From Orbicella franksi (taxonomy: Eukaryota), in NCBI GenBank assembly GCA_964199315.1, contig OZ116699.1, forward strand, positions 13,020,001 to 13,084,000: a stretch of DNA of 64,000 nucleotides, written 5' to 3'. Made by a program: the position numbers and the translations under genes. The notes below the pieces were generated by a model, which was given only the letters and a program-made list of their open reading frames with translations, was not told the DNA's origin and ran no database searches. Positions 53,301 through 64,000 of the stretch are shown here, piece by piece (the first letter of the stretch is position 1; each line of letters begins with the position of its first letter).

Positions 53301-56300
53301 GCTGCTCATTGTTTGGCTGATTTTCCCTCTTCAGGCACCAATCCTCAAAGTCTCCGACTGACTTTGCTAAACGCAGACAGCTCTCAAGCCCTGCGCGTTG
53401 CCATTTGGTACACCACACCCCAACGGTTGGACGTATACCGCGCAGGTGTCTACATGTACCCGACTAATGCTAAACTCGATGAACAGAACTTCAGCTACAA
53501 AAAGAAAGACCCCAGTCTCCCGGATGACCAGTTTGAGCCTTCGCTTACAAGCAACAGCGGAGCTAACTACTACGATCGAGAAAGCCAACTGTTTTATGTA
53601 GTGGTTAAAGGAAATGTCGCTGTGGACATAAGAACTGCTCCTGTTGTACAAGTCAAACTTGGTAAGAATAGAATGAAAGCTGGAACTATCAAAAACCTCT
53701 GTATTCTCTTAATATTCCTTGATATGGCTCTCAAATTGTTTAATGCAAAGACTGAATTTTTTCTCTTAGGAAGCAAACCTGTTCATTTCAACGACTTTTT
53801 TGAAAAGAATTTAATCCAAAATCTGGCCTCTCTTCTTAATATCGACGAGTCCCGCATTCGGGTGGTCGAGATCGTAAATGCTGCCGGGAGCTCACGAAGA
53901 CGTCGAAGAGAACCCGACGATAAGACGATGACCGTCACTATCGAGATCGGTGATCCGCCGCTGCCTAGCATTGCTTACACGCCAGAGGACAAGTTTGTCC
54001 CTGAAAATTCAAGGTTAGTGAGATACCCCACCTTATGTACGAACGTTTTCATTTCCAAGTTCGTAAGCAAAATATTTCCCAAGTATTTATGTGATGTCGC
54101 TCACATTACTTTTAAGGGAGTTGACGTCAAAATCAAAGGGATTTGATGGTTTTGGTTTTTCTTCAGACTTCTCTCTCAGTTGATTTTTGGGAATCAGGAA
54201 TGGCATTTTGTAGTCATTTCAAATACCTGTTATTTACGAATTTTATTTCTCTCATAGTTTCACCACCGCTCCTCCAGTTACCATAACAACCACAGCCTTA
54301 CCAACCCAGAACCCCACAGATCAGTACGTTGCTCTCCAGTCGTTAGCGTCGAAAGCTGTCGAGGTAGCCCAGACAGGTCGCATGGCTTCCTCACTCAAAC
54401 TCGACATGGTATCGATTGAAGTCACGGATCCCGAACCTCCTCGAAAACTCCCGAAAGGATGGACACGAGCCACGCCCGCAGAGGGTAAAGACATAGAAAT
54501 AAAGAAAGAGAGCGCGCGTGTTTACATATTCTGATTCAAACAGCCGTGAAAGTTTGGGAAATTTTGAACATTAGGATTTCAAAATCATTTTCGAATTCTC
54601 CAAAACTTTCCCAAGTTTTTAAGCTGTGCAAATAAGAATGAGTGACTATATCCCATTCCTTTTAGAAATTCAACAAAATTTTACAAGGCTTCTTCAATTG
54701 TTTTCTCAAGAAAGCAATGATGTTATGGAGTTATTGACTCGCTAACTGTTTTTTTAGCGGGACCAAAGAATGGTACATGGCGGTTTGATCAGGTGGTGTC
54801 CATGAGAGAAGGCAACAAGACCAATCCAGTTCATGATTACCTGATTCCTGTTCGACTGATTGTGATGCAAGAGCCTCAAGGAGCCAATGAAACTGTTCCC
54901 TTCCAAGTTCAACCAAAGCTTATGATGGTCGACAAGCTTAACCGCACTGTACGCACGCTGGGACATGGGTACCAGGGACAGTGGTACGTAGGTCTAAGTG
55001 TTTTGTCCTCATTGCTCATCTTTTTCATTTACAGACTTTCCCATTCTTATTTCCAATGAAAACGTATCTCTTTTGCATTGCAAACTAATGAATACATCGA
55101 GCTGAGTTTGATTTTATTCTGAACATTTGACAGGTATGTGACAGCGTTCATCAAGAATGGAAGTGGAGATCCTGATGCCTTGTTAGGCGGAAATATAACT
55201 GTACCTTTCTCTGATGGCTGGGCAAACTTTACCAACCTGAACATCAGCCACAATGGCACCGATTACGTCTTAGAATACAACATAACCTTCCCCTTTAAAG
55301 CAAACTTTACAGCTCTGTCAGAGCCGTTTGAGGTCAAGGAGCGAGTCTTGTACTTCACACTTGTTAGTCACCCACGTGATGTCAACGAAACTGTTCCTTT
55401 TGGTCAGCAGCCTTTGGTAGAAGTCCGCGACGCTGCTAACGGAGAAGTGGTGACGAATACTGGATGGAAGGGCAGGAAGTGGATTTGCAAGGCGTCTTTA
55501 GTGAATCCTCAGAACCATAAAGGTAAACTTTATGAACACATTTTAAGACAGAAATCACATGCAGGTAAACTCACTGGTGAGAATGTTTGACCTTAATAGA
55601 ATCCACTGCATAGTCTGAGGTACTCTGTCTGATAACACCAATCTTTTGTAGCGAGTTGGTAATAGAATAACCACCATTTATAAGAGACAACGACGTGAAA
55701 AAGTTTTTTTTTTCATTTAATTTATGGAATTTATTCTTTTGTAAAAGTAGCCGTTTATCCACAGAAAGGGATAAATTCGATTTTCGTCTTGTTTCGTTTT
55801 GTTGTCCATTAACAGGAAAGCTGCACGGATTAGCCAGTGTAGAGTTTTCCGTCGGTATTGCGTCCTTCAGTGATCTCTCTATTGATCATGAAGATAAGAA
55901 CTATATCCTTAACTTTGAAGCTTTCACTGTTGCACCATCTCGATACCAGTTCTCTATCAATGCTACTCCATTTGATGTGAAAGAGAGGGTCCTGGAACTG
56001 GTTATAACTCAACAACCAGGTAAGGCCTGTGCTAAAACGCTCTCTTCTCTTGTTATTTCAAGTACAGTTGCACCTCCACTAAAGGTCACCACTTAAAAGC
56101 AGCTAGGATTTCTTTTTCACTTTAACCTTAATGAAATATCACTCTACCGCCTGATCTCTTCAGCGGCCGGTTGATTCTGCCTCCGTTTGGACGTTGAGCA
56201 AGGTTTATTTCTAGTATTTCAAAAATGCTGTGCTTCTAAGGATGATTACACCCATTGCTCAGCTTATACCGGTTGTTCACATATATTCTTCTGATGTTTA

Positions 56301-59300
56301 ATAAAGAGAGGCAGTTATCATAACTTAGTTTTATCTAATAATTCGGAGATTCGCTTTAACTGTTAAGTCACTGTTATTCTTAGCTGTGATCAACATTAAA
56401 TGTGTCCGTTTTCCGCCTTTGGCAGTCAGGCGATACTTCTCGTGTCAGACTCCGTCGCTTGTCTTGTCGATTATGTTTCGCACTTCAAGGCAAGTCTTCA
56501 TTGTGTACAATTGTAACTTCTTTCTCCCATTGGTTAACTGTATAGGTACATAGAGCCTTTGTGTCCTCTTACGTTAAAAACTTGTGTTTTTAAAAATCCT
56601 CCAGGTGACTGTAATGACACCGTTCTATGTGGTTCTCAACCTATCCTCGAAATCCGAGACACAGCTACGAACACTCTGGTTGGGAATTTAGGCTGGCGCA
56701 ATAGAACCTGGACGATTCGAGCATCCATGGAACAGGGAGCTGGAAACGAGGTACTAATCGGCGAAACTCAATTCCAGATCCCAAGCTCTGGACGCGCGGA
56801 GATTTCAAACCTGAGTTTTTATGACGTTGCGTCAGGCTATCGAATGAAATTTAACGTGACTGTCACTCCGTACTCTCAAGCTTACTCGGGACTCTTTGCC
56901 ATATCAAAAACTTTCGATGTAACACCACGGCAGTTCTATCTGAAGGTTGTCACGCAAGTGGCGAATGCGAATCAGTCAGTGGTATTTGGCACGCAACCTG
57001 TTGTGGAGGTACGCGACTTGGGGACAGGAAGAAAAGCCACGCCCCTGAAGTCTCCTTGGTGGGTGGCCGTGTCACTTTACTCTAATCCGAAGCTGGGACA
57101 GTCATTCCTAAATGGAACATTCAATGTTTCAGTAGTCAACGAGCGAGCTGTGTTTACAGACCTTCTTGTGACATTGTATGGGCTTGGTTATGTGTTGAAG
57201 TTTGAGTCAAGGTACGGCCACAGTGTACTGTCAGCTCCTTTTGAGGTAAGTGACTTTGGCTCAGTTCAAGCACCGTTCAGTCTTCTGCAGCAAGTACATT
57301 TTACAACAATACCTTGCGAACCTAACACAGCCTACTACGCAAGATATTTCTGCAGTACTTTTCCTTGCGTATGCTAGGTTTGTAGTTGTTTGAACGTTTG
57401 AGCGTCGTTGAGGCTTTTGTGCATTAATGGAGTAAACAGAGTATATGTACCAGTCGCCATCTTTTTCCTAGGCTACAGGGGGATTAATAGTTGACATCAT
57501 GTGATTACAGTCGACGTTTATTTCTTGACCATGCTCACCTCAAATTCTTGTATACTTTATTGGTTAGAATGTTGATAAAAGACTCAGTTCTGATAATGAA
57601 ACTTCAAGGCATTATGTTGATTATTTATCTCCCAAAGGCCGATTCGTCCTCGTTTATTCAGTTGTCTAATTAGAAACAACGCAAACACTTTCTTTTGTAC
57701 AGGCTTATTCATCTACTTTGGTGGTGCTACTTCTGCTGTTGTTGTCACTGTTGTATTTGTAATCTAAGTAAATAGGGCTTCAAATGTGCTACTTAGAAAA
57801 CGTCTGTATAGTTTTAAAGTTAGCGTAGTTTGTTTATTGTAACAAGCGTATCCTATTTTTCTCTTTTTTTGTTTAGGTCCATTACGTCAATGACTACTCT
57901 CCAGTCTTCACCAGTCGCAATTACAGTGCTACTATCAACGAAGGTGTAGCGATCGGTTATCAGGTCATCAACATCCATGCCACGGACAATGACACAGGAA
58001 GCCAGGGTGACGTCTTCTATGCACTGAACGGGGGAAACATCGGCAGCAGCTTCAACATCAACAGAACCTCCGGTGCCATCACCACCGCCGGCAAAGTAGA
58101 CCGTGAAACAACCGCTGTATACAGCTTGATTGTAAAAGCTTTCGATGGAGCTGTTGAAGAAAAAGTTCGTTTCACCGAGGAGCACGTTATGGTGTATATT
58201 CTCGACCTTAATGACAATGCTCCAGAGTTTACCAACGATGGCCTCACTTCTTTCGTAAAGGAAACCGCTGACATCAATGACGTCATTCTTCGGGTGGACG
58301 CACTGGACCGTGACGCGGGAGAAAACGCTGTGTTGCGATTTTCAATCATATCCGGGAACAGTGATGGTTATTTTGACATCAACCCTGCTACAGGGGACAT
58401 TTTTGTGAACAGATCGCTTGACCTGGAAGGATCAGCCCTACCTCTTCTAAACTACAGCTTAGGTAAAGTTAGATTTTAAAAATATATCAGAGCAAATTGA
58501 CGTATTTACGAGTCAAGAAATGGCATTACAGTTTCTTTTTGTTAAATGCGCGTCACAGATGAGCAACGTTTGTCATTATCAGCAAAACAATGCATTTAAT
58601 GGGCCAAGTGCTCAAAGATTATTTGCATTAAAAGTTTAATTTCAAATTTAACTCTTTTGGAAGGGAAGTACAATGAATCTTCTAATTTTGATATCCGTTG
58701 TTGTTAGAATTGTAGAAATGCTAAAATAATCGTATAATCTTGCCTAAAATGAAACATTGGATCTTTCTGTGCTTGGCTCTTTATGTCGAGGAACTCCTTG
58801 AAGAAAAGCGAGCCTCAAGTATCCAGAAATTATCATGTGAAAATGTTGAGCAAAAAGGACTCTTGAAGTTGTTATCCTTTGCCGCATTTATTACAAACCT
58901 TGAATTATAAGAATTGTCTCGTATGATTCTATGCCGTGCACATAGCCAGTTATGTTTTGATATATTAAAGGTTAACTTGTTTACCGGGTCAACCCTAGCT
59001 TATCTAATATACCAATGCCAATTGGTCAATTTCAGGTATTAACGTGACCGACCAAGGCTTACCCGCGCTGAGTAACTTCACTGTCGTTACAATAAGCATC
59101 TCGCCCGTCAATGAATTCTCGCCCCAGTTTACTCACAATCAATCGGTCTCGGTTATCGTGAAGGAAAATCAGCATCCTGGAAATGGTCTGGTGTTGTTTG
59201 ACGTCAATGCTGCAGATAAAGATTTTGGAGAGCAAGGTATGTAAACTGGAAGATAGATATCAAGGTTAAAGAGAGATTTTTAATTAGCAATTACTAAACG

Positions 59301-62300
59301 GAAAACTTCTCGCCCACAAACCATACTGAAATAGAATATTTTTTCTAAGACCCTTCGAATATGATTTTTAAAAACGAGCTTTACAAACGATCAAAAACAT
59401 GATTCAGTAAATACAAAAGGTTGCAGTCCAGTTCCACTTACACCTTTTTGTGTATTTTTGATCCTTAAGAGTTTTACTAACAACACAGACTTTAGAGCAG
59501 CGATCGCTTATGCTTCGCTTGGGGTCAATATTTTGATGTTCCACTCTTTGATTACACCTACCTCGGTAAAGAGTGTACAACCTTTTTGAGTCTGTGATAA
59601 GGATGGTAAGTTATGTTCAACTCAGTTACAGTTAAGGCGCAGTCAATTTCAACTATTCCTTTTTTCTGTAATCTGTCCTCAGGAAAAGTTCAGTATTCCA
59701 TTTACGACGGTAACAATGACAGCAAATTCCAGGTGAACTCGTCTTCTGGTGTCGTCATGTTGATGTCATCACTGGATTATGAGGCCGCACCTCTCCGTAC
59801 ATTGATAATCCGTGCGTCGGACAGTGATCCTGGCGGTCATGCGCGCTACACTGATTTCTACCTGCACGTGCACGTTGATGATGTAAACGACAATGCTCCA
59901 AGGTTTGCTGGTAGTGTAGTCACTGTACTGGTGCCTGAGACTCTGTCAGTAGGTAAGGAAATTTTTTGGTTTGCTTGTTGACGCTTGACAATAATTCTAG
60001 TACTCTAAATAGGCACTACTAGTATTGTCGTATTTAGATGATGTTCGGTGTTCAAATATGCGTTTGGAAAATTTGCGTGTGGACACTGCGAAAATGACGA
60101 AGAAAGAAGAAGAAAAGAAGAAAAGAAAAGATTTGAGACAAACCTCAGTCAGAGCGCTCACAAGCTCACCGACAGTTCTTTTGTCAGGTTGTTGTCAGAT
60201 AGATCATTTAATTTGTAATTTAAGATAATTTACATGTTACGATTTGTCAGCCCGATTAGTTGGCTCACTCAAACATGCTGGGGTTTGTCGGTCTGAATTC
60301 GTGGAGACATGATACCCACTGGTCTTCAAAAACGTTGTCGAGTAAGATGGCAACATAACAATTTGTTGCTTCTTCGATGAACCACCAAATATATTTTTAA
60401 CAACGTAAGAAATGTTCCATTATATGTTTGTCTTATCCTCGTTTCTGAGTAGTAACGATTGTATTTTAATTCTTCCATGACAGGGAAAGCCGCTGCGAAG
60501 ATCCAGGCCACTGATCAAGACTCGGGTGAAAACGGCCGTGTGACTTACGTCATCGTCTCGGGAAACTCGGACGGGTATTTCAGTCTGAACTCCAACACTG
60601 GTGAACTAACAACACTAAGGAGCCTCGATCTAGAGTCCGCTCAAGCCCCTTACCCAAACTTCACGCTTGTAGTAGTAGCAAGGGATCATGGGAGTCCTCA
60701 GTTGACTAGCAATGCAACATATGTGTTGATGATCAGCAGCGTGAATGAATTCTCGCCACAATTCACACGTCCCGGGTCTTCCTTACAGATTCCGGAAGAT
60801 AATGCTGTGGGGGCCATGTTGCGTCACTTGACTGCCACAGATATGGACTTTGGTCCTGATGGATTGGTCACGTGAGTGTATTTTTTTTTTGTTTGTTTGT
60901 TTTTTTCATTTACAATTACTCAGCATTTTTTCGAGTTCAAATAAGTGTGAACAACAGTTTTAAGTTGAGGTTACCTCTTGACTTGCTATTCTTGGCTATG
61001 GAATTTTATCGTCTAGCCTGCTATTAATGAAGAGTTTAAACCGCACATAACGATGACAGAAACTCTTTTGATAGGCTACTTAGAAATCCTGATGGTAATT
61101 TTTTTCTCTTCTTCTCTTAGGGTCAAAATCTTCATACAACTGTTTTTTTGTTTGTTTGTTTGTTTCTTTTTCTTTTTCTTTTTCTTTTTCTGGTGGAAAA
61201 GGCAGAAGCTAAATGATAAATTAATCCTTTTTCATTTTACATTTCTACATCAGATACCAGATAGTTTCTGGAAACGAAGACAGACGTTTCCGTATTGAAC
61301 CAACTTCCGGAAAAATATTCATTCACGCGCCACTGGATAGAGAGACGAAATCGACATACAGCCTGAAAGTAAAGGCTTTTGATAGGCCCTGTCAAGCAGC
61401 CAATCAGAGGTCATCTATTATCTTTGTGAATGTGACACTGACGGATGTTAATGATAACAAACCAGTCTTCAACAAAGGTTCTTATTACGCCGCTGTCATG
61501 GAGACTGCGAGCATCGGTGGTGACGTCATCACGGTGAAGGCAACTGATGCTGACGCAGGTTTGGGGATGCGTTTTTTTTTTCAATTTTTTTCAAAACGTT
61601 GGACAAATTTTAAGTCAGCGAACACTTTCGAAGACGAGCTTTCATGACGTGGTCACGCAACCACTTGGTGACTATGATGACGAGAGAGGTTGTATCAGCC
61701 CATGGGAGAAGTGAACAGACTTAAAAGCTGTAAGGACTAAATATCTGCCGCAATCTACTCCAATACTTTGCTAATGGAGGCAATGAATGGTTTGAAAACT
61801 GAACAGAAAATTTGAAAATTTATGACTTGTTTATGAAGTAAACAAAGCACAAGGCAAGGTTTGGGTTTATGATGTGTACTGTGTCACTTAAAATGCACAG
61901 AATAGCTCGTTTTAGTCCTTAATATCTCTACTATGTTATGTTACAGGAGTAAATGGCCAAGTTCAATACAAAATCAAGTCTGGCAACAATCATGAGTTCT
62001 TTGACATCGACACTGACACTGGGACAATACGAGTTAAAAACAGCCTCGATCTGGAATCACAAAAACACGTGGATGATTTACTGTACACTCTGACAGTTGA
62101 AGCATCGGATAGAGGTCAAGTATCACTTAGCAACGATGTGCTGGTTACCATAGAAATAAAGTGTGTGAACGAGTTCCCGCCAAAGCTACAACATTCCGAA
62201 AGTATTTACGTGAAAATCCCAGAAGACACTGCCATTGGCGCGAGAGTTGCAGATATCAATGCGACTGATAAAGACTTTGGCCTAGATGGAATACTCACTT

Positions 62301-64000
62301 ATTCGATAATTAGTGGCAACGAAGACAATAAGTTCGATATCAACCCCAGCACCGGTATCATAACTGTTAAAAACGAGCTCGACTATGAAACTGTCGTGAG
62401 ATACTCTCTTGTGATACGAGTAAGCGACAACGCTCCACCGGCTCAGCGGCTTTCCACTGTTGCCAAGGTAACAGTTCGGTTGACGAACGTGAATGACAGC
62501 GGAGGTGTGGATGTGTTGATAGAGGATGTCCTTAGCAGAATAACGCCGCCAGGGGATCCTGCTGATGTCGCAGGGCTACCAACGAGTAGCCCGATATCTG
62601 TGGTATTGCTGTATGAAAATGGTAAGTTACAGATTGGAACCAGGGGAGAACGGGCTAGGCTTATATAACTATGACAATAGAAACTTTCATTAGAAGTGAA
62701 GAAACAGAAACTATTGCGGAACTTTATCACCAGTTTAAGTGAACAAAAATAACGAATCGATGATTAATTAGATTGCTGAATTTTCCTCTGTTTTCTTCCG
62801 GATGAGAGCCAAGACCTGACGGTTACAACTGACGAATAATTCGGTATTGGAGTGTTAGGGTAACGTTCATTAATACTTTGGAAGTGGCAAGGCTATATGT
62901 GATACCGACTGGATAAACCGATACGGTGTACTTAACTTGAGACTAGGACAGAGAACAAACTTAAATGGAAGCTGATCTATATGTTTGTCAACAGGAAACA
63001 AAGTAAAGCTCTCCTCTGATGACAGCAGACTGACATTTGACGACAAGTCCGAATCACGTGGTCTTTTCACAGTTGTCCAAGCTGACGACAAGAAGATTAT
63101 TAAAGCAAACAGCGCCGGATTGCTGGGTCAAGGTGTCCTCATTGTTCGTGTTCACAACGTTTACAATGTCCGCGTCACAGTAAATGTGGTGGGTTACTCT
63201 TCGCTACAGTTAACAGCTGTTCCTTATCCAGTCATTGAAGGATCGAATGCCACTTTGACGTCGTTGAAGCGTATAGGAAGTCTCCATGGAAACGTCCAGT
63301 TGGCTGCTCTCAAGCTATGCCTCGTTTTGACGGATAAGTCCACCACCGATGTTTCCACGATGACGTCGACATCATTTCGTGTCGTAAGCAATGACGTAGG
63401 AGTTAAAGTTTCCATGGATTCTATTCCTAAGAACGTGCTGTTTATAGACAGGACGAGCACAAGCGGGTACATGAGCTTTCGTGGGCAGTTCTCCGGTAAA
63501 GAGTCGGGGAATCTTGTTCTCGAAGTTTCAACGGAAGTAATAACAGTTAATGAAATCCTTGCCGTGGAAATAATCGGGCTCAGGAATCAAACTCTTTTGG
63601 GTCCAGTGTTGTCCACGCAGGCCCAGGTTCAAGTAGACTTTGTTATGAATGATAGCTCTGTGCTTAGAGTGCAAAATTTCTCCGCAATCTCTGGACTTGT
63701 AGCATTTAAAATCAGTCACGAAAAAGCAGCTTCGGTTGACCGCGTGACGGGGGTTGTTATGCTGCTGTCAGACTATCATGACTTGGTGACCGTGACAGTC
63801 ACTCCGTTTCAGGGTCTTGGAAAACCAAAGCATGTGCAATTGTATTGTAACACAGTCCCACCAGTGGGTGGTGTTGACATTGGACAGGAGTACGGCCCAG
63901 CAGTACCAGCATTAATAGCTAACCAGAGAGTTACCATTCCTTTACGCGTGAATCCTGGCAAATCAAAACTTCTTGCCTTTGATTTGAAGATTTTGTACGA
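23297..64000 (+). CDS. PKHD1L1: Giant fibrocystin-L (PKHD1L1)-like protein extended by cadherin repeats; at least 54 exons, at least 5695 codons, runs off the right end of the window
   Basis: Hand-traced GT-AG exons with compatible phases and no in-frame stop: 23297-23369, 23491-23565, 25530-25671, 25963-26071, 26455-26512, 28704-28791, 29325-29378, 29812-29885, 30264-30374, 30873-30983, 31206-31298, 31458-31732, 32049-32300, 32630-32711, 33041-33328, 33947-34278, 34819-35107, 35195-35494, 35846-36123, 36500-37583, 37852-37916, 38627-39239, 39501-40315, 40736-41411, 41638-42216, 42689-43168, 43862-44155, 44269-44419, 44519-45042, 45522-45849, 46710-46944, 47348-47525, 48088-48339, 48540-48725, 49042-49348, 49455-49672, 50166-50513, 51023-51637, 52218-52376, 52687-52893, 53335-53661, 53770-54013, 54258-54484, 54758-54983, 55134-55522, 55816-56019, 56605-57245, 57877-58462, 59036-59236, 59683-59952, 60484-60871, 61254-61558, 61947-62621, 62995->64000. 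The translation is collinear with vertebrate PKHD1L1 as I recall it, e.g. RAEVGLLTRN, CPDGFDPGIFAVQTC, GRYPIHFHL, FFIEDGIETGNTIQYNL, TPATFWVTNPNN, NPSDCIDMDCD, ESLDADTELRRLSPVA. Confidence 0.93.
23491..31298 (+). CDS. PKHD1L1: Exons 2-11: IPT/TIG domains 1-3
   Basis: TIG starts RVIKITPNTGSLQGETKLTIHGEGF, TPTITSLTPRYEFPGTLLTIRGRMF and DILEVSPSIGSTAGGTVLTIKGKGF, assembled from ten small phase-consistent exons. Confidence 0.85.
28280..28538. repeat. Recent tandem duplication, 132-bp period, in intron 5
   Basis: Copies start at 28280 and 28412 (GGCAGTCTGGCATTGTGCTTAT...GTGGCGGATTGCC) and differ at about 4 positions. Confidence 0.95.
31458..32300 (+). CDS. PKHD1L1: Exons 12-13: PA14 domain
   Basis: RGLLREVW...[30 protein letters not shown]...LKKGQRYYIEALHVQDGG matches the PA14 pattern, including the DD motif. 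Confidence 0.88.
32630..36123 (+). CDS. PKHD1L1: Exons 14-19: PKHD1L1-family region between PA14 and the TIG array
   Basis: HCGRFSLKNP, LCFSYKG, ASTPPVGGTFDI, SRVGTCASYNWIVEW and PIPGDMLR align in order with the equivalent PKHD1L1 segment as recalled. Confidence 0.85.
36500..41820 (+). CDS. PKHD1L1: Exons 20-25 (part): IPT/TIG domains 4-14 with an inserted cupredoxin-like domain
   Basis: Eleven repeats of the pattern P-x-[IVL]-x-x-[ISL]-x-P-x-x-G...T-I-x-G-x-G-F...C-x-V...I-x-C. The cupredoxin-like segment GYAWNPQTIVINSGDSVQW...PGTYFYSS...MKGKVIV lies at 37852-38850. Confidence 0.9.
38198..38358. mobile_element. Short MITE-like element in intron 21 (right end degenerate)
   Basis: TAGCCTGCGTAGCTGGCGGTTTAGTTGG ... 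CCAACTAAACCACCAG inverted match. Confidence 0.55.
41821..46944 (+). CDS. PKHD1L1: First G8 domain plus parallel beta-helix (PbH1) region
   Basis: VWSSPFTW...GELIFDEKDLTLNAEKILVADGGKLQVGTEERPFQHKAKIVLHG (G8), then GQAFGLGRYPIHFHL, GCAIHHTFNRAVTVHG and HNAAAGGSHHGYWY. Confidence 0.92.
46010..46239. mobile_element. MITE in intron 30
   Basis: Imperfect TIRs CAGGGTCGGGTTGTTCAGAAGCCGGTTAA / TTAATCGGGCTTTGAGCAACCCAGCACAG; no clear TSD. Confidence 0.65.
46974..47231 (+). mobile_element. tRNA-derived SINE in intron 31
   Basis: tRNA-like head (GGCAGGGATAGCG...GAGAGGGCTCGCCTCCC...GGGTTTAAATCC B-box), body GTGGGTTGAGTTTGTTGTTGGTTCT...TTCTCC...AAAAACCAACA, and AT-rich tail. Confidence 0.7.
47348..53661 (+). 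CDS. PKHD1L1: Second G8 domain, second PbH1 region and downstream PKHD1L1 ectodomain
   Basis: WSDPDAW...LFIYGTLELE...GGNLIIGWEDQP...GSKAIGVFGNLEIHG; LAAEVGLLTRNIVIEG; ENVEFRHCGQEG; GPMDHGCCFGYAC. Confidence 0.92.
53770..54484 (+). CDS. PKHD1L1: Exons 42-43: polybasic (furin-like) site and Thr/Pro-rich linker
   Basis: NLIQNLASLLNIDESRIRVVEI...SSRRRRRE...IEIGDPP, with RRRRR at 53895-53909, then FTTAPPVTITTTALPTQNPT. Confidence 0.85.
54758..57245 (+). CDS. Exons 44-47: four tandem copies of an Ig-like module (QP...F-x-x-QP...G...F-x-[ND]-L...F-[ED]-V)
   Basis: Repeats start at about 54844 (LIVMQEPQGANETVPFQVQP), 55345 (LYFTLVSHPRDVNETVPFGQQP), 55989 (LELVITQQPGDCNDTVLCGSQP) and 56931 (FYLKVVTQVANANQSVVFGTQP). 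They end PFEVKER, PFDVKER, TFDVTPR and PFE|V. Confidence 0.85.
57877..62497 (+). CDS. Exons 48-53: seven cadherin (EC) repeats
   Basis: Canonical cadherin motifs recur seven times: [IV]-x-E, A-x-D-x-D-x-G, DRE/DYE/DLE, A-x-D-x-G-x-P and D-x-N-D-N-x-P or V-N-E-F-x-P. Confidence 0.93.
62498..64000 (+). CDS. End of exon 53 plus exon 54 (open to window end): beta-rich extracellular region; last ~25 residues cohesin-like
   Basis: 62995-64000 is a 1006-nt stop-free frame after acceptor CAACAG|, phase 1, matching donor AATG|GTAAGT at 62621. It is absent from the ORF track because it runs off the window. It ends ...GGVDIGQEYGPAVPALIANQRVTIPLRVNPGKSKLLAFDLKILY. Confidence 0.85.

Follow-up and report, generated by a model that had tools for sequence, protein, structure and literature searches.

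Introduction

The bond between cohesin and dockerin is among the strongest non-covalent protein links and is regarded as a microbial tool for building cellulosomes. In the proteins named coherins, lefftyrins and hedglings the modules follow in the order conserved region, cohesin and three BIG domains, and the cohesin homologue of TMEM132 was proposed to act as a spacer β-sandwich (PMC6030884). In the literature consulted, cadherins with cohesins are assigned to choanoflagellates and sponges only (PMC6030884, PMC8164589; coherins by secondary citation). Here, we addressed the end of a 64,000-nucleotide stretch of the genome of the coral Orbicella franksi (contig OZ116699.1, positions 13,020,001 to 13,084,000, forward strand; this whole stretch is hereafter the window), in which a gene encoding cadherin repeats runs over the last position. 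The initial annotation, made from the letters alone, noticed a cohesin-like motif at the window edge and proposed a coherin-type cadherin fused to fibrocystin-L. It counted Nematostella among the hosts of coherins, which the same papers do not confirm, choanoflagellates and sponges alone being named there, and a literature search found no paper linking dockerins to cnidarians. The analysis described below makes it very probable that the gene encodes a giant type I receptor of the coral, whose membrane-proximal stalk carries both a cohesin and a dockerin, which may form a clasp. What is new here is the presence of three Big-like domains before the cohesin and of a calcium-type dockerin after it in an expressed cnidarian receptor.

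Cohesin and dockerin modules

Parts lying beyond position 64000 are given in window-equivalent coordinates, which become contig positions by the addition of 13020000 (G000:C2, 497 Mb assembly). The modules considered first are arranged as follows.

62210..62497, forward strand: last cadherin repeat (EC7), Pfam PF00028 at 124.8 bits, ending in NVNDSG.
62995..63860, forward strand: three Big-like β-sandwich domains of the AlphaFold model, with limits at exon residues ~1-63, 64-181 and 182-286 (ends at 63191, 63545 and 63860).
63861-64211, forward strand: cohesin (exon residues 287-403, ~117 residues), assigned by fold, profile and family hidden Markov model (HMM).
64227-64379, forward strand: first dockerin repeat, with Cys410, loop DANADCVFDIRD and helix 1 (helix 426-440 in the model).
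64701-64790, forward strand: second dockerin repeat, with loop DFNLNGVVERND and a helix.

The letters that gave rise to the cohesin call, GGVDIG, PAL and RVTIPLRVNPGKSKLLAFDLKILY, are indeed found at 63864-63998, and the part of the module inside the window (63861..64000) is larger than was thought, comprising ~46 of ~117 residues instead of ~25. The AlphaFold model of the whole exon, built on an alignment of 71 sequences (pLDDT 92.3, pTM 0.82), is all-β up to residue 403 and contains three β-sandwich domains, a fourth β domain at 287-403 and two helices. When this 459-residue model was submitted to Foldseek, the matches were confined to generic arrays of tandem Ig domains, namely LigA Big domains, S-layer proteins and chains of the nuclear pore complex, for which reason the cohesin was modelled separately. 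Residues 281-459 taken alone (pLDDT 88.9) retrieved cohesins in all of the top 33 PDB rows of Foldseek, the best being 3ul4_A at E 1e-5, while VIA-align against 48,161 chains gave cohesins in all of its top 18 rows (Z 11.6-8.9, rmsd 2.2-2.9 Å) with 106-111 residues aligned over model residues 7-123. The AlphaFold DB clusters matched by the same model are cohesin- or dockerin-named, several alignments extending through the helices. Since cohesins occupy the top rows of both structural comparisons with the PDB, the modelled fold confirms the window-edge motif as the start of a real cohesin module.

The same assignment follows from two other kinds of data. Family HMMs for cohesin and dockerin were built from an alignment of 50 tandem units headed by the window's sequence (A1), minus the window's own row and its 91% orthologue; the cohesin HMM gives the window's module 87.8 bits compared to 7.6 for the best of 200 shuffles. 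Language-model features of the exon place it with Cohesin/Dockerin clusters at 0.94, with 190 features shared. Thus, the first reading of the module as cohesin was right by fold, by family profile and by language-model features. A chance occurrence of the motif, or derivation of the exon from bacterial contamination or misassembly, might be suspected from the shortness of the motif visible at first and from the lack of any Pfam match on the exon; this is extremely improbable given the strength of the fold and profile evidence, the splicing of both exon ends to animal exons, which is seen in RNA libraries including a polyA-selected run, and its location inside a 39.7 Mb contig. The RNA joints, the cohesin fold rows and the family HMM scores relative to shuffles rule out both the chance motif and the bacterial contamination.

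Twenty residues past the cohesin, over a linker with one conserved cysteine, the chain reads GDANADCVFDIRD and then turns into a helix. Both 12-residue loops of the two repeats keep ligands at positions 1, 3, 5, 9 and 12, namely D-N-D-D-D and D-N-N-E-D, as judged by inspection against the 4fl4_A dockerin alignment. Cysteines before loop 1 and inside it (C410 and C422) are nearly invariant in the family. The repeats lie in different exons, and neither half matches PF00404 when the exons are searched apart; by the family dockerin HMM the first half obtains 50.6 bits, the second 38.2 bits and the two spliced together 102.4 bits, with 3.1 as the best of 200 shuffles, which indicates a complete dockerin split by a phase-0 intron. 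Judging from these profiles, a two-repeat EF-hand-type dockerin with all calcium ligands follows the cohesin. Its position directly after the cohesin changes the functional reading from that based on a cohesin only.

Family of tandem units

HMMER search over 1.84 billion cluster representatives revealed 288 relatives at E<=1e-3 and 24 at E<=1e-30, the best being the 91% orthologue; these are cluster representatives counted by sequence. Several relatives of ~860-1000 residues share the layout of cadherin end, β-rich region, motif and membrane helix, and some of them rise above the Pfam gathering cut-offs (24.1 bits for PF00963 and 22.9 bits for PF00404): P0002 for Cohesin at 24.9 bits, and P0003, P0127 and P0147 for Dockerin_1 at 25.0, 28.2 and 24.2 bits, respectively. 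At least 107 tandem cohesin-dockerin units were cut from the best 150 of the 288 relatives. Within the 50 units of alignment A1, PF00963 is matched by 39 and PF00404 by 24, and in a larger set 46 of 71 aligned relatives match PF00963. Used as a profile against the PDB, this alignment meets dockerin 4fl4_A (1e-7) and cohesin 4ums_A (4.3e-7) in the expected order. As far as sequence comparison goes, these data show that both modules are homologous to those of a large eukaryotic family in which cohesin and dockerin form tandem units.

The largest members are giants of 3,000-8,000 residues with 3-8 units each, together with cadherins, Dockerin_1 and TMEM132-type Ig domains; they match the Pfam families of the TMEM132 2nd to 6th domains, and one of them (P0013) reaches 87.6 bits for Pfam Cohesin. 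In 36 of 41 long-linker units (alignment A4), one to three furin-type Rx[KR]R motifs are located between cohesin and dockerin, flanking a spacer of 20-60 residues in giants including P0005, P0013 and P0025, and none is present in the seven short-linker units of the coral gene's own subfamily. The motifs in the giants suggest proteolysis that would leave fragments joined by cohesin-dockerin bonds.

Related units are encoded at no fewer than three other loci of the coral genome itself, among which are the following.

G000:C6:31274541-31277507 (L008:2042-5008), reverse strand: paralogue, a single 989-residue last exon.
G000:C3:6056699-6066518, reverse strand: giant-type loci, two cohesin-region matches, whose open frames are 1831 and 2122 residues long.

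The paralogous exon of contig 6 runs from the cadherin end through Big-like domains and a cohesin to an unsplit dockerin, which is followed by a GSIV motif and a transmembrane (TM) helix; its identity is 98% with P0009 and 47% with P0014, and its orthologues in other assemblies are graded from 98% down to 52% identity. The matches on contig 3 probably represent a giant multi-unit gene of the family.

Putative clasp and its alternatives

In the arrangement proposed for the receptor stalk, the cadherin array would be followed by three Big-like Ig domains, a compact type-I-like cohesin, a 20-residue linker and a two-repeat dockerin, after which a juxtamembrane region with the SEA-like motif GSILV, a single membrane-spanning helix and a tail with a MYND finger at its end would complete the chain. 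The cohesin and the adjacent dockerin may join as a calcium-dependent clasp by means of dockerin helices 1 and 3, as they do in cellulosomes, the two partners belonging to the same chain or, in a head-to-tail arrangement, to neighbouring receptors. Such a clasp would tie the adhesive ectodomain to the SEA/TM segment by a strong, non-covalent link that calcium could switch. We give this calcium-dependent self-complementary clasp, in-chain or between neighbours, close to an even chance or slightly below it.

Binding was predicted for the relative P0003, whose cohesin (363-482) and dockerin (483-583) gave 0.63 in the ESMFold2-based complex test compared to 0.19 for the best control, a mark that 51 of 78 solved complexes attain, as do 2 of 108 mismatched pairs. 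Runs share at least 83% of contacts, the pLDDT of the partner is at least 66, and the predicted contacts sit on the helices after each calcium loop. Since this pair resembles many solved complexes and its parts are neighbours in one chain, the test supports the clasp without proving it.

Several circumstances weigh against the proposed reading. Pfam searches of the cohesin exon and of the next exon taken apart give no cohesin, dockerin or SEA, so that the PF00963 comparison suggested by the initial annotation succeeds for the aligned family units and fails for the exon itself; even the 91% orthologue (P0001) reaches only 20.1 bits on PF00963 with the cut-off at 24.1, and phmmer of the cohesin exon against PDB sequences yields nothing even at E 10. 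The cohesin is also shorter than bacterial ones (~117 versus 140 residues). As for binding, it was predicted on P0003, which is only 36% identical and was tested as two pieces of one polypeptide, and the pass may reflect memory of the many solved complexes or mere adjacency. Finally, bacterial proteins possessing both modules, the adaptor scaffoldins, are usually devoid of self-binding.

The last consideration leads to the possibility that cohesin and dockerin are real and each binds other partners, so as to form a heterotypic extracellular scaffold after the manner of adaptor scaffoldins, the multi-unit giants of contig 3 or the paralogue of contig 6 being candidate partners. Cohesin and dockerin placed in tandem on the same bacterial chain normally differ in specificity, three or more other loci of the same genome encode related units, and related giants hold 3-8 units each. 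Nevertheless, the pair of P0003 passes the complex test on its own (0.63 vs 0.19), and the model of residues 281-459 (pTM 0.82, with pLDDT of 87-91 for the helices) suggests defined packing on the cohesin; binding to other partners is assessed as somewhat unlikely.

Neither module needs to bind anything if both are structural relics, the cohesin being a β-sandwich spacer and the dockerin a calcium-binding stiffener comparable to the calcium sites between cadherins. TMEM132 keeps the cohesin homologue in the absence of a detectable dockerin in vertebrates (PMC6030884), and the coral module is shortened and has diverged in sequence below Pfam thresholds. This explanation is nonetheless improbable, as the best 150 relatives contain at least 107 units in which cohesin and dockerin have stayed adjacent, all calcium ligands are retained and the predicted interface uses the canonical helices.

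A broader supposition, that animals of this lineage use the cohesin-dockerin bond as a force-bearing, calcium-switchable clasp in giant adhesion or mechanosensory receptors, is rather unlikely by our estimate. On this supposition, the tandem pair of the coral would lock the cadherin/fibrocystin-L ectodomain to the SEA/TM stub or chain receptors head to tail, and multi-unit relatives cut at their furin-type sites would become chains of fragments in which cohesin-dockerin bonds are the sole connection. The gene offers a system for asking whether early animals used such a clasp in adhesion or force transmission and what the cohesin of TMEM132 has lost. Annotation by catalogue would miss the cohesin-dockerin pair since the sequence of the gene itself lies below Pfam thresholds.

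Organization and transcription of the locus

The exon chain that carries these modules out of the window is composed of the following elements.

62498..62621, forward strand: linker end of the cadherin exon, 41 codons, phase 1, with the donor GT at 62622.
62622..62994, forward strand: intron of 373 bases, GT..AG, with the joint present in RNA contigs X1, X6, X8 and X11.
62995-64379, forward strand: cohesin-bearing exon of 1385 bases and 459 residues, crossing the window edge at 64000.
64380-64700, forward strand: intron after the cohesin exon, GT..AG, from RNA contigs.
64701-66462, forward strand: next exon, coding from the second dockerin repeat into the start of the tail, from RNA joints.
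64791-66462, forward strand: post-dockerin stretch, with ~190 residues outside named domains, RGSILVYFD, a 25-residue hydrophobic helix, RKRIKSRKDR and the tail start.
67195-67319, 67556-67835 and 68682 to the stop near 68858, forward strand: last exons, from RNA contigs and the open spliced frame.

In the Pfam Cadherin comparison of window:61916-62621 the best stretch covers residues 99-187, which sets the end of the last cadherin domain at about 62476-62497. The linker at 62498-62621 is likely to contribute the initial strands of Big-like domain 1, and the corresponding stretch is unbroken between the cadherin and the β-rich region in the uninterrupted open reading frames (ORFs) P0002, P0003, P0009, P0014 and P0017. 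The ~375 post-cadherin residues announced by the initial annotation were counted as 376 (41 + 335) across the intron at 62622-62994, which had not been stated there, is implied by the residue count and is real according to RNA contigs. An acceptor AG precedes 62995, a GGA codon being split across the intron, and the exon of 62995-64379 ends in phase 0, as read from the DNA of the same contig past the window edge. The observation that neither TM, EGF nor LamG parts follow EC7 within the window held, Pfam being empty on the exon and the model all-β to residue 403. Big_2 of Pfam is matched in 3 of the 71 aligned relatives, and the TMEM132-type Pfam families have no match on the exon or its 70 aligned relatives.

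RNA contigs of four runs (X1, X6, X8 and X11) from four studies were placed on window-equivalent 62561-68560. Their joints, all GT..AG, lie at 62621->62995, 64379->64701, 66462->67195 and 67319/67320->67556/67557, so that the cadherin exon is spliced to the cohesin exon, and this in turn to the exon of the hydrophobic helix. At least 90% of the sampled words of the cohesin exon are present in 12 RNA runs, several of them labelled coral metagenome. At 67835 the contigs of three runs have a loose end whose 30 letters are the start of the exon at 68682. Low-depth contigs (depth 4-10 vs 120-300 in exons) cross introns at 62593-63023 and 66486-67224; this is unspliced precursor RNA or DNA carry-over in RNA libraries. 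In the last intron, at 67940-68360 (L002:4940-5360), RNA contig depth rises up to ~62,000 compared to ~10-600 in exons; the segment is a ~360-base interspersed repeat of young age, for which the genome contains at least 1452 candidate copies at 94-96% identity, and the extreme depth is due to this high-copy repeat. Rfam scan of the high-depth intron gave no match.

Extension of the gene model past 64000, as the initial annotation had advised, demonstrated that the frame goes on for 379 bases and that a single hydrophobic helix is met only ~690 codons downstream; a stop or TM helix right after 64000 is ruled out by the exon reaching 64379 and by the open spliced frame. The SEA-like motif RGSILVY is conserved in relatives. 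Pfam SEA has no match downstream of the dockerin, and the Atlas feature search of the region from dockerin to membrane produced weak leads, the best at 0.81 unnamed and SEA at 0.76. An in-frame stop at 66584 is bypassed by the donor at 66463, which leads over two small exons to the MYND finger CPCGAVAHFQCSACCKRGYCGRDCQSKDWRHHKNTC; this finger scores 27.8 bits on PF01753 with the cut-off at 22.7 and belongs to the same transcript. The joined exons make a single open frame closing in the MYND finger, and the exon of 67556-67835 just before it has no Pfam match. In run X1 only, a second acceptor is used 3 bases on (67195/67198, skipping 732 and 735 bases), and the choice would gain or lose one codon of the cytoplasmic tail.

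Upstream, on the same strand, lie exons for PA14, IPT/TIG, G8 and a CEMIP-type β-helix. In the genome of a relative, an ORF situated just upstream of the cadherins shows 51-60% identity to the window segments 55123-55587 and 56538-57374, and this relative keeps the order pre-cadherin region, cadherins and cohesin exon, which, as gene order in a sequenced relative, is consistent with a conserved fibrocystin-L/cadherin fusion. Internal repeats of ~120 residues make up the pre-cadherin region, the ORF at L007:4409-5887 aligning to window 55123-57374 in three registers; Pfam found no match on the pre-cadherin window ORFs (55123-57374).

Comparison with known systems

With its upstream half, the locus resembles fibrocystin-L (PKHD1L1), as PA14, IPT/TIG arrays, G8 and a CEMIP-type β-helix are encoded on the same strand. 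Cadherin, cohesin, dockerin or MYND parts are not known from vertebrate PKHD1L1.

In common with coherins, the coral protein possesses cadherin repeats and a cohesin on one membrane-anchored chain, as established from RNA contigs, and in this part the proposed coherin type stands. It departs from coherins in the order of domains, which is three Big-like, cohesin and dockerin, and in the lack of a match to TMEM132 families, as well as in its coral host, the putative fibrocystin-L-like N-terminal half on the same strand and the tail with the MYND finger. Because the domain order differs from that of the published module, these sequence features give only partial support for placing the protein in the named coherin family. 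The giant relatives are proteins of the kind called coherin, lefftyrin or hedgling (PMC6030884). TMEM132 is likewise an animal surface protein in which a cohesin homologue stands beside BIG-type Ig domains, but, unlike the coral protein, it has neither dockerin nor cadherins (PMC6030884).

Compared to type I cellulosome complexes (1OHZ, 3UL4 and 4FL4), the cohesin jelly-roll is similar, with Z of 11.5 to 1ohz_A and rmsd of 2.2 Å, and the dockerin repeats the bacterial scheme of two EF-hand-like loops and two helices, its predicted interface falling on helices 1 and 3. The coral system differs from cellulosomes in the absence of enzymes and scaffoldins, in a cohesin ~20 residues shorter, in a longer inter-repeat spacer of the dockerin (~25 residues) and in the conserved C410 and C422 located before and inside loop 1; both of its modules belong to a single transmembrane protein of an animal, with 20 residues between them.

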